A stretch of 52,096 bases of DNA from Klebsormidium nitens. Its lineage: Eukaryota > Plantae > Klebsormidiophyceae. Location: assembly GCA_000708835.1 (NCBI GenBank), contig DF237466.1, forward strand, positions 14,809-66,904, in the 5' to 3' direction. The first letter of the stretch is position 1; every line of letters begins with the position of its first letter. Positions 30,811 through 35,123 of this stretch are shown here, in pieces. The translations under genes were made by a program, and so were the position numbers. Below the pieces are notes generated by a model. It saw only the letters and a list, made by a program, of their open reading frames with translations. It did not search any database and was not told the DNA's origin.

Positions 30811-31576
30811 GCAAACAGCAATCCGGAGTGTTCGTCTCTAATGTAAAGAAGTTCACTGCTCCTTGTTAGATAGGCACAGTCGGATGCCGCTTCGCTTGAA
30901 AGCAGCTACGACTATGCAGAGTTATTCGAGATTCTTAAAGTATGGATTCAGAATAGGGCCCGCTGAGCATCTCAAATGAGTCTTGTGGTAAGTTCCGATT
31001 CCAGATAGGTAGTCAAAGATCAAAGACTGACTTAATAAGTATTAGCATATGATATTGAAAGTGTACATATCATAATGCTTTCGTTTCGTTTTCGGCCTAC
31101 ACCAACTCTGACGGGCGTGCGGAACATGGTTTGTGATAAATTCATGATATATTGTTTCCCTTGCACTCTGCTTGGAAGATCATATTGCTTATATTCGATC
31201 AGTACAATGTGCAAAAAGCCTTGAAGGCCTGAGCTTATTTGAACAATCTGCTCCTAGCCAAAAACGCTATTGGCCGTCGATATCACGTAATCCGCGTCTT
31301 CAGTGCACGCAGTCGACGAGCTGCATATGAGTTACCGCACCCGACATACGATCCGACGTGAGGGACTGCTGGCGCGCAATTTGATATTTCGCGCGGGCTA
31401 CAATTCAAGTTGAGCATGGTTCGCAAAAACGCTGCGGCGCGTCTGTTCAATGATACAATTGGACTTCCGACGGAACCAGTTCTACCTTCCGACAAAACAA
31501 TCCCAACACCCACTTTCCGACGTTACGTCGCTACAGCAACATCCTTTCCGGCACTTCTGCCATCTTCGTTTTGTGC

Positions 31577-33498
31577 TTAGTAAACCGGTACCACGGTGGT
31601 TGCCTGCAGCTTGTCAAAGTTGTTCCACATGAATCGGCTCGGGGAGGTCGGGTCGAGCCCCATGAAGAACCCCCAAACCATGTTCGTCCACTCCTGCTTT
31701 GAGATATGGCCATCGCCGTCCGTGTCGATAGCCTCGAACGACAGCTTTGCATCCTCCTCCCAATTGCGCCCGGCCCCCTTGTGCATGTTGCAGAACTCCA
31801 CCCAAGAAACCTCTTCATCGCCGTCTTCGTCAAGAAGCTGCACGAAATCACTCCGGCAACTCTCGTGATTGTTTTAAGGGCCGATTGTGTCAAGATGAGC
31901 TCCCGGGGGACAGGTGGGGTTACTTTGGAGCTTAGGGTGGGTGCGGGTGCGGAGCGCGTAATCTTTTGGATTAGGATTCTTAGTTGAGGGGCCCGAGCTT
32001 ATGTATCTCGAAGCAATTTCCTGTTGATGCAACCTAGACTTGCCAGTATACACGAATCGGTCGAGGCATCGTGAAGAGTAACTCAAGAATTGGAGGAGAT
32101 CGGCATGGCACGTACTGCACCACCCGCAGATCTACATATTTCTTAGAGAATGAACAATGAGCGTTGGGGTTATGGGTAGCTCGGTAAAACTCGTTACCGA
32201 GCAACCCAACTTCGGGCAAAGAGTGGACGCCCATCGTGACCAGGATGAAGAATTGACAGCTATGTACAATGGTTCAGCGATTCCAGATTCAAGCCACAAC
32301 GTGCACTTGACGACTATTCGCCAGAAACCAATTGAACCACGCGGCGGACGTGTGAGCACGCTAATGCACACTTCACAAGAAGAGACGAGAGCGTCAAAAC
32401 AAGCGTGGGTCTTGGTCACTCAAAACTCTGGATTGACTTTGTCAAGGGTTAGCAGGCCTGACCCTGTTTCCAGTCCATCAAGGTCTGCTGACCAACTTTG
32501 AATTGCCAGAACTTCTACAAACTGAACAGATTAATAACATCAAGAGTCAATGGGACTCACGCCGAACCAGCGATTGCCGATCTTCTCGAGATACTCCGCG
32601 ATGCCCGAGGTGCCACACTTGTCCGCCATGTGCTGAATCATGTCCCTCTTGCTGAGGGGGATCCCCTTGAAGCCGTAGAAGGTCCACGCTTCGTCGTAGC
32701 CAATATTGAAGGAGGCCAGATCCGCCTCGGTCAGGGGCTTCTTGATCTGGGCTAGAGTGCTGCAGATGAAAGTAGACACCTGTCAGTCTCCTGATGAACC
32801 GAGGTTCCTAGATGAGATGGGCACTTTTGCAGGCCTTGTCTCTTTTGAGGGAAAGGAGGTTTGTTGGAGAAGCAGCACCTTGTGGGTCTGGCCTGTTTCC
32901 AAGCCGGAAGTATTGCCATAAGACAGGTCTGAGCCGAATACGTATACTAAGCGCTGCTTGAAAAATGGGCAGCGCGATCAACTTATCAATCATGTTGCGC
33001 TTTTTTATGAGTCAACTCTTTTGAAAGGATCGAGGAGAGCTCTGGGCTAGGGAGAGAGTGCTGCAAAACGAGGGGCACCTTCGTATGTTGGCCTTTCCGA
33101 ACAGGCTACTATTTACCTGGTCTCTGATACTTTCCTGAGGTTTTCAACACGGATTGGATTGTAGTCCTGCGTTTTACTACTGTGAAGGTGTCGCTCTAAA
33201 CTGCCGTGACGGGGGGCGGTACGGGGAGAAAGCTCTTCAAATTTCTCTTGGGCCGTCCATTGTAACGACCACATTTCTGAACGCGGGTAAAATGCTGTTA
33301 TCAAAACCACCCAAGCCTAGAAGAAGCGGCGGGTAAAACTTACAGCACAAGCGAGCGGTCCTTGTCATCCTGCGCGAGGAAGCCATTCTTGTCGACGTCG
33401 AGAAAGTCGAAGAAGTAGGAGATCTTCTTCTTCCAAAAGTCGTTGGCCAGGTACTCGCTTGCCGTGTACGTGGGCGGCGGTGTTACCATGGGACCCAT
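31577..33498 (-). CDS. EF-hand protein of the sarcoplasmic Ca-binding protein / calexcitin / photoprotein-like type, 204 aa
   Basis: Exons 33498-33344, 32759-32561, 31837-31577, in phase. EF loops DVDKNGFLAQDD, DEDGDEEVSWVE and DTDGDGHISKQE, with the second hand degenerate. Also FWKKKISYFFDFLD and the C-terminal GFFMGLDP. An alternative start at 33489 is possible. Confidence 0.85.
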
Positions 33499-35123
33499 AT
33501 CCCTTCACGGTTGCGTGTGTGACGTCACTGTGACCTGGTGGAGTCTGCAAAAGCAACGGGCGAACCAGGTGTCAATGGTTGGGGCTATCTTTCTAGGCTA
33601 CATGTGTGACACCACAACTTCAGGGGGGACTTTGCCCGCAAGAGGGAGACCTTGCAGCAGAAACCAGCCCGGCTGTCCACTGTGCGACTTCTGCACGTTT
33701 TCGACTATCTTTTCCCGAGCCAGCTGCTGGTAAGATCGAGATTGACATTCAGCCTAGCTGTCATGCACTTGTGGAGTGAAGCTCCGCTACGTGGTGATTG
33801 CGCCCCTGATCGAGATGGAAGTCAGTCAGGATTAGCAGATGCCCTGTCACAACCAGATGGATTGCGTTTAGACAACACCGGATTTTAAGTTATGATTCAA
33901 GGGCATTACTCCTCTTAGCTCGTGAAAATGAGTGAGCTGGTGATCTTGCAGACTTTAGACTCAAGTTAGACTATCAAACTCAATTTAATTACTCAAGATG
34001 GCCAAATGCTTCCATGCTTCCAAATGGAAGCCTACAACTAGTCAAGATTCATTGATCCGTTAGAAAAGCTCAGAACCATTGATTGTGTGCACAGATGGAT
34101 GCTTCACAGATGCTTCACAGATGTGATGCGCCTCAGTTGTTGAAACTTCAGTGATCAGTATAGGTGCCCATTGGCCCGCCCCAGAAACACCAGCCAGTCT
34201 GAACAATGAGGCCAAGGCCAAACCAGCTTGGCTTCATCAACGAACAGACACTTGTAGGTGAGTGAGAACCCAGGAACCGTCAGATTCAACCTGCGATGAA
34301 CGATGGTAACCAAATAAAGGACTCCGCGCGGCCAGTCCAAATAAGATGGCTTTTTTCAAAGGTCTTATCTGCAAAGCTGTATATGAAATTAGGGGGAATG
34401 TAAAAGTCAAGCCGCCGGGACTAGACAATTACCTGAGACGCAAAAGAAGATCCTCTGAGAAGCCGCCAAAACTCAGACCACCGCGACCTACTGATCAACC
34501 AGCTGCCCAGATCGACCAGGTACTCAAATGTTCGAAGCAGCTGGCGTCTCCAGTGCAAGTGCCGGTTGAAGGTCAAAGAAAGGGTCAGCGCGCAGGAGAC
34601 TTACTTGCAGTGCTTAACTTGTCAAGCACTGAAGATGCGCGAGCGTTGCAGTGAAAGATTGCGAACACCAAAGTCTGTACACGGATTTCAGCGAATGGGC
34701 GAAGCTGCGAGCTTCCGCAGCAACTGGACAGTGGAAGGAAAAGAGGGCCCTGACTCTGATCTGAGGTGGCGACTCAAAGGAATTCTTGATCTGCAGCTGG
34801 CCGCTGGAGCGTCAAAGAAGACCAACGCATACGTATATGACATCTGCCAGTACTGGTGTTTGCCCTTTGCCAGTACGGTACTGTGTATACTGGTGTTTGA
34901 TCGACTTGGTTCGAGCGCTGCAATGATTGCAGTGGCCTGAACATGAAACTGGGGTACCAGTACAGCCCTGAGCCAAGGCTGCTACCTACCGCCCCCTACG
35001 GCGAACCCAACAATCATTAATGTGTCGTCAGACTCACAATGATCCAGATCCACTGCGCCAGTAGGTAAGTACTAAGTACTATTATAACCGGCCAGAATCC
35101 GATTCTACTAAATTTTAATCACT

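Follow-up and report, generated by a model that had tools for sequence, protein, structure and literature searches.

An SCP-like protein with four EF-hand motifs encoded by an expressed, intron-containing gene of the alga Klebsormidium nitens

The window analysed here is a stretch of 52,096 nucleotides from contig DF237466.1 of Klebsormidium nitens, a green alga whose lineage lies near the origin of land plants. Its interval 31577–33498 is exactly the coding span of one minus-strand gene, in which three coding exons yield a protein of 204 amino acids. Profile searches and a predicted structure place this protein in the compact four-EF-hand SCP-like superfamily, which gathers the invertebrate SCPs, calexcitin, the Renilla coelenterazine-binding protein (CBP), the Ca-regulated photoproteins and the actinobacterial calerythrin/CabD proteins. 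Membership of this compact type, unlike the usual plant calmodulin-like kind, gives the protein an odd place in the tree of life. Very probably, the locus is an expressed nuclear gene of the alga with spliceosomal introns, and its product an SCP-like protein that acts as a Ca2+ buffer or sensor and is no photoprotein. What results is a family assignment for a protein that was already on public record as a “hypothetical protein”; no new mechanism is described.

The first-pass annotation of this DNA had proposed an SCP-like family member that is not typical of plant CaM, CML or CBL proteins. The assignment is now supported by a family profile, by a Foldseek search and by exhaustive structural alignment (Z 12–20). 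The profile (A2), made from four Klebsormidium-type sequences only, was searched against all solved chains. Its first match is Renilla CBP (2hps; E 1.4e-14, 57.7 bits, profile 29–199 on chain residues 11–183) and its second Nereis SCP (1q80; E 4.5e-12, 49.5 bits, profile 28–198 on chain residues 2–171). Each of these two chains, as well as mitrocomin and aequorin, aligns with A2 in one colinear stretch, and calmodulins reach at most 43.6 bits, through three partial repeats only. Among solved structures, coding exon 1 alone matches the aequorin N-terminus best (residues 11–37, E 0.0085) and the N-termini of obelin and of SCPs next, and exon 2 alone has no match. The C-terminal tail after EF4, searched alone, gave nothing significant, so that its resemblance to other members counts only within the full-length alignment.

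The AlphaFold2 model computed from 85 aligned rows (pLDDT 92, pTM 0.87) predicts one globular domain, as the SCP-like superfamily requires (two face-to-face EF-hand pairs in about 175–200 residues). The best 50 solved structures retrieved with this model by Foldseek all belong to the SCP/photoprotein/calexcitin/CBP/CabD group, with Nereis SCP at the top; obelin, aequorin, JH diol kinase, berovin and the okadaic-acid-binding protein are among them. Searches of the ESM Atlas point the same way, with TM 0.72–0.79 to arthropod SCP and actinobacterial clusters. An exhaustive structure aligner was also run on the model. It aligned SCP-type chains over 155–180 residues, and the chains 4wri, 4mn0 and 2sas likewise fall within the Z 12–20 range. 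The individual alignments are as follows:

2hps, Renilla CBP: Z 19.7, 180 of 184 residues, rmsd 2.4
7pjd, Bombyx JH diol kinase: Z 18.1, 176 residues
9l5m, Pinctada SCP: Z 16.7
1q80, Nereis SCP: Z 16.7
4ndb, calexcitin: Z 16.5
3kpx, clytin: Z 16.1
3akb, CabD: Z 13.6
1nya, calerythrin: Z 12.3
Soybean CaM4, C-lobe: Z 6.3, 69 residues, one lobe only
1uhn, AtCBL2: Z 5.8, 74 residues, one lobe only

That the protein is after all an ordinary plant CML or CBL sensor, only unusual-looking, is scarcely credible in view of these comparisons. The outcome that would have overturned the first-pass annotation, with the best matches falling among common plant CML or CBL proteins, did not arise. Generic Pfam EF-hand families, found above cut-off, are indeed the sole family-library matches (NCBIfam gave EF-hand-type matches below threshold only), and a search of solved structures with the single sequence lists calmodulins first. 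However, those calmodulin matches are partial, repeated and confined to EF3–EF4; once the family profile is used, SCP and CBP rank above them with colinear matches, and the soybean calmodulin lobe and AtCBL2 score far below the SCP-type chains in structural alignment.

The second rank of the Bombyx enzyme, JHDK, brings up another alternative, an SCP-fold enzyme, for instance a kinase that acts on small molecules in the manner of insect JH diol kinase. Identity to JHDK is only 15%, however, non-enzymes are equally similar in fold, and no nucleotide-binding motif was noticed, none having been looked for. Such an activity is very unlikely.

The gene model is established by exon translation and by splice joints in assembled contigs, which also establish transcription, and it confirms the 204-residue protein and the span first proposed. 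Both coding introns are of the GT..AG type. The joints 31837/32561 and 32759/33344 are found in contigs from four runs of four studies, the label “RNA?” carried by these runs being the tool's guess, and the same contigs show no further joint inside the coding region. The coding parts of the three exons measure 155 nt (33498–33344), 199 nt (32759–32561) and 261 nt including the TAA (31837–31577). Intron 1 interrupts codon 52 (CT/C, Leu), and intron 2 lies between codons 118 and 119. An in-frame TGA stands at 33507–33505, three codons 5′ of the ATG. The parts of the gene, from 5′ to 3′, are:

34433–34690, minus strand: non-coding 5′ leader exon, placed from loose contig ends, with an approximate upstream end
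33545–34432, minus strand: intron of the 5′ untranslated region (UTR) in the long-leader form, acceptor AG at 33546–33545
33344–33544, minus strand: exon with the remaining 5′ UTR and coding exon 1, ATG at 33498–33496
32760–33343, minus strand: coding intron 1, phase 2, 584 nt, its joint found in the four runs
32561–32759, minus strand: coding exon 2, residues 52–118, with linker helices and the degenerate EF2
31838–32560, minus strand: coding intron 2, phase 0, 723 nt, its joint found in the four runs
31360–31837, minus strand: last exon, residues 119–204, stop TAA at 31579–31577, 3′ UTR of about 215 nt

Coding exon 1 comprises residues 1–51 and two bases of codon 52, and carries the N-terminal helix FWKKKISYFF and EF1. 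The leader exon was located by loose contig ends at 33547 and 33549, the longest being 255 nt, which map to 34436–34465 and 34610–34634. It has two alternative donors, each followed by GT, so that it ends at 34605 in a short form or at 34433 in a long form. Both forms are spliced to one acceptor (33545/33544) and each is present in several runs; in the short-leader form the 5′ UTR intron spans 33545–34604. On the 3′ side of the gene, contigs end between 31360 and 31425. A four-exon model was discarded: its mini-exon near 32451–32500 breaks the frame, and no contig joint lies behind it.

Much of intron 2 (32132–32590) is covered by low-depth contigs in two runs, at a depth of 4–6 compared with 14–120 for the exons. 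These contigs may stem from RNA that was not spliced, from carried-over DNA or from another transcript. An open reading frame of 114 residues lies in the same region on the plus strand (32157–32501).

The deduced protein is identical to GAQ89397.1 (P0156; KFL_005170070, Klebsormidium nitens, 204 residues), deposited as “hypothetical protein”. The exon translations occupy residues 1–51, 53–118 and 119–204 of this entry, in which residue 52 is Leu. P0156 was reached by cluster look-up of a fragment from a word search with exon 3, which, within the length window of the tool, had returned two Klebsormidium-type fragments, 88–90% identical. In a JGI metagenome, two orthologous loci (L001 and L002) are complete for the three exons, with unchanged order and 89–92% identity over coding exon 2. 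Comparison of the window gene with these orthologues gives a dS of 0.42 and a dN/dS of 0.13–0.15, and the gene is under purifying selection. N-myristoylation at Gly2 was considered and rejected, as the next residue is Pro and the orthologues begin with M-A-P.

Klebsormidium-type algae have a small family of such genes, with paralogues of three to four types or more, which is older than the divergence of the sampled species. The paralogue P0012 of K. nitens (KFL_006760030, 215 residues) is 50% identical to the window protein over its full length, and a word search with it found no match besides P0012 itself. Its gene (locus L006) and the window gene have both coding-intron positions in common, so the introns predate the duplication; together with the spliced transcripts, these shared old introns rule out contamination. 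Further paralogue types are represented by fragments, P0009 (locus L003) and P0014 (locus L004), which came, like P0012, from a HMMER search with exon 3. L003 lies on a Klebsormidium-like metagenome contig (1928–2248 and 3675–4322), is 59% identical to the window gene in the last exon, and adjoins a Prim-Pol reading frame of the kind found in this alga's large transposons. P0012 itself lies on scaffold DF237625.1 (L006, 5599–7636); about 1 kb away stands an NRPS-like gene whose domains (AMP-binding, PP-binding and NAD_binding_4) are of the carboxylic-acid-reductase type (A-T-R). In the literature library searched, no paper deals with the locus tags, and none with SCP-type proteins of Klebsormidium or of any green alga.

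The functional parts of the protein, read from its sequence, are:

33364–33399, minus strand: EF1 loop DVDKNGFLAQDD, Asp at loop position 12
32639–32674, minus strand: degenerate EF2 loop position GFKGIPLSKRDM, without a Ca-ligand pattern, every ligand being lost
31796–31831, minus strand: EF3 loop DEDGDEEVSWVE, ligand pattern present, loop position 6 occupied by Glu in place of the usual Gly
31691–31726, minus strand: EF4 loop DTDGDGHISKQE, canonical, the best Pfam EF-hand_1/5/6 stretch of the protein
31580–31690, minus strand: EF4 exit helix and C-terminal tail WTNMVWGFFMGLDPTSPSRFMWNNFDK...VP, from alignments A1 and A2

The loop sequences agree with the layout given by the first-pass annotation (EF1, EF3 and EF4 intact, EF2 degenerate), and the motifs that it had pointed out before EF1 and after EF4, FWKKKISYFFDFLDVDKNG and VWGFFMGLDP, are both present; the signal exceeds chance. 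Judged by their residues, three loops (EF1, EF3 and EF4) have a full ligand pattern and EF2 is dead; the EF2 position of the alga aligns under the EF2 loops of the bacterial members. Residues D34, G39 and D45 of EF1 are each at least 90% conserved in an alignment of 85 family sequences. The Asp at loop position 12 is also found in Nereis SCP and Renilla CBP, and its use to recognise the family is our own reading of the alignment and not a published definition. In the orthologues L001 and L002, EF3 reads DEDGDGEVSWVE, and the paralogue P0012 also has Gly at loop position 6. As no variant of the Glu is found in the contigs, this is a real lineage-specific change, and the K. nitens-specific Glu may weaken the Ca site.

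The tail is of the family type, F-x-x-G-x-D-P-x-x-P followed by (F/W)-G, and in the Klebsormidium sequences alone it is about 15 residues longer. In the mixed alignment A1, D180 and P181 hardly vary, and G174, F176, G178, D180, P181, W189, F192 and D193 are invariant in the four Klebsormidium-type sequences. The protein is acidic (pI 4.6) and rich in aromatic residues (14.7% F/W/Y, including eight Trp); three other members checked for Trp, namely two bacterial-type rows and the metagenomic protein P0088, have none to two.

Most likely, the protein serves in the cytosol as an SCP-type buffer of Ca2+/Mg2+ or as a slow sensor. It would reside in the cytosol because it has no targeting extension. 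Judging from the loops, each molecule would bind two to three Ca2+ ions, EF3 being probably weakened, and the two EF pairs would clamp round an aromatic core. Such a protein may then buffer Ca2+ and Mg2+ or respond slowly to Ca2+, as is thought for SCPs and calerythrin, and it would not work as a photoprotein.

Several points weigh against this favoured role. The best match by both sequence and structure, Renilla CBP, is a ligand carrier and not a buffer. JH diol kinase, okadaic-acid-binding protein 2.1 and the photoproteins bind hydrophobic small molecules; as several members of the superfamily thus bind hydrophobic ligands, a pure buffer role may be wrong. The Glu at loop position 6 could even abolish the EF3 site. 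Moreover, contig depth is unsuitable as a measure of expression level.

The main alternative is that the protein carries a small hydrophobic molecule under the control of Ca2+, like Renilla CBP or the sponge okadaic-acid-binding protein. The aromatic-lined interior would hold an endogenous metabolite, and Ca2+ at EF1, EF3 and EF4 would open the protein and release it. Besides the leading position of Renilla CBP (Z 19.7), the model is nearer to ligand-bound forms (TMq 0.74 with 2hps and 0.71 with 1el4) than to Ca-loaded apo forms, which score lower (0.64 with 2hq8, 0.59 with 1sl7 and 0.63 with 1sl8), but AlphaFold tends towards closed states regardless of biology. The Trp and aromatic content is unusually high in comparison with bacterial members, whereas the His residues that contact the ligand in photoproteins are replaced. 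Genomic neighbourhoods point both ways: the paralogue P0012 adjoins the NRPS-like A-T-R reductase gene, but no recognisable biosynthetic gene stands beside the window gene, for which 20 open reading frames in 25.8–42.3 kb were scanned with Pfam without any match. We consider this carrier function possible but rather doubtful. A broader proposal, in which an animal-type SCP/CBP family, kept or acquired from another eukaryote, would consist of Ca2+-gated metabolite carriers with one paralogue tied to its neighbours (the carboxylic-acid-reductase and O-methyltransferase genes beside that paralogue), is decidedly improbable. If true, it would reveal a Ca-triggered system of small-molecule release undescribed in the green lineage.

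A separate, well-covered transcript (31000–31117 of the window) ends about 250 nt downstream of the 3′ end of the gene.

The superfamily is very large in Actinomycetota, and a recent horizontal transfer of a calerythrin-type protein from a bacterium, with introns gained later, has thus to be weighed. In a HMMER search with exon 3, several of the next-best matches after the Klebsormidium-type ones are actinobacterial, among the matches listed, and no other green-lineage homologue is found among the 150 matches listed (at least 50 bits); since matches below 50 bits are unlisted, absence from other plants is not established. The 120 rows listed for a word search with the mixed alignment A1 are swamped by actinobacterial ones, which deprives it of information on nearest neighbours. 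On the other side, a pattern scan that covered 185,579 bacterial and archaeal species, each by a single genome, had its closest match in Lentzea, at only 27% identity, the remaining matches being no closer or partial. Two metagenome scans gave no match. The A2 profile scores 75 bits with P0088, 72 bits with the best actinobacterial protein, 64 and 48 bits with domains 1 and 2 of the tandem SCP of the annelid Owenia fusiformis, 58 bits with Renilla CBP and 50 bits with Nereis SCP, so that an animal-type protein slightly exceeds the best bacterial one.

A maximum-likelihood tree of 50 rows groups the algal pair with Owenia and the metagenomic proteins P0088 and P0268, in a set of six rows (support 98/86) that stands outside the 44 actinobacterial-type rows. 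The six rows all have odd composition and long stems, and a topology keeping five of them together (without P0268) is not rejected (p-AU 0.41). The tree covered algal, Owenia, metagenomic and actinobacterial-type rows, and no SCP, CBP or photoprotein sequence of a solved structure or of a named animal or cnidarian protein besides that of Owenia. The start Y-L-x-x-x-F-W-x-x-K-M-x-x-Y-F is common to the alga and the animal-type rows, and the bacterial rows have no such FWxxKMxxYF helix. Finally, the two introns are shared by paralogues of only 50% identity. A recent bacterial origin is unlikely, and for the transfer of a calerythrin-type gene in particular we see only a slim chance. The affinity of the algal protein is with the animal-type members, subject to the long-branch caveats just given. 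Ancient descent with losses and transfer from eukaryote to eukaryote are equally compatible with the data. In a previous study (PMC3570280, 2012), the photoprotein clade was placed beside Renilla CBP and Nereis SCP, and the origin of photoproteins was put at the base of Metazoa.

The exon-3 HMMER list is topped by proteins of 1,200–3,300 residues (P0003–P0008 among others), with 8–23 EF-hand stretches. Many of these giant multi-EF-hand proteins match EF4 and the SCP-type tail (query residues 28–74); P0003 and P0004 carry NCBI and Logan source labels.

Inventories of plant Ca signalling list CaM, CML, CBL and CDPK proteins, to which an SCP/CBP-type algal protein adds an uncounted class. The papers searched treat the SCP group as animal and bacterial. 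A green-lineage member that has introns and is expressed, selected and duplicated implies either that the animal-type branch predates the animals or that it has moved between eukaryotes. The protein is small, Trp-rich and predicted to fold well; it should be easy to express, so that Ca and ligand binding can be assayed.

Comparison with characterised systems helps to specify what the alga shares with each of them. The photoproteins (aequorin, obelin, clytin and mitrocomin) have a predicted fold in common with the algal protein (clytin Z 16.1, TMq 0.66–0.73), and aequorin residues 11–37 share W and F-x-F-L-D-V with algal exon 1. However, the His of the aequorin motif GRHKHMF aligns with algal Ile26, and the C-terminal His/Trp/Tyr of aequorin appear to correspond to Val172/Phe176/Phe187, in a less certain register anchored on D-P. 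Photoproteins have Glu at position 12 of EF1, whereas the alga has Asp. Photoprotein chains end soon after a D-P...G-G tail, and their C-terminal Pro caps the cavity; the algal chain runs for 23 residues past D180-P181 and finishes with V-P-V-Y, well beyond the photoprotein C-terminus. The alga thus has neither the His/Trp/Tyr triads that line the coelenterazine cavity of photoproteins nor a chain end just after the D-P tail. With these residues replaced, Asp at EF1 position 12 and a longer chain, light emission is not expected, which is consistent with the earlier view that luminescence was unlikely.

Renilla muelleri CBP (2hps/2hq8) resembles the algal protein in packing four EF-hand motifs into a single globule, in the Asp at EF1 position 12 and in an F-x-F-G-L tail after EF4. 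Identity is 18% only. The algal chain is longer by about 17 residues at the N-terminus and about 15 at the C-terminus, and its EF2 has degenerated completely. We know of no coelenterazine from this alga.

Nereis diversicolor SCP (2scp/1q80) and the algal protein both start with a W-x-x-K-M-x-x-Y-F helix and both have an F-W-G tail. In the Nereis protein EF1, EF3 and EF4 are in use and EF2 is non-functional, and the algal loops are of the same types; in photoproteins, too, EF2 is the degenerate loop. The two proteins are 21% identical, and the alga differs by its Trp richness and by the Glu at position 6 of EF3. Known SCPs come from invertebrate muscle or neurons, whereas the algal member belongs to a streptophyte.

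Proteins of the calerythrin (1nya) and Streptomyces CabD (3akb) type also have Asp at EF1 position 12 and a D-P-x-x-P tail, and are of similar length (175–185 residues). They are 20–29% identical to the alga and reach at most 72 bits with the profile; unlike the alga, they keep a canonical EF2-like loop and have no N-terminal Trp helix. P0088, encoded by an unbroken reading frame of 181 residues on a 1.2 Mb contig, is about 28% identical to the algal protein. The Owenia fusiformis protein P0066 (CAH1796031.1) is, unlike the alga, a tandem duplication of the SCP-like domain. Both of its domains start with Y-L-x-S-x-(F/Y)-W-x-R-K-M-x-T-Y-F, a motif that the algal protein has as well.

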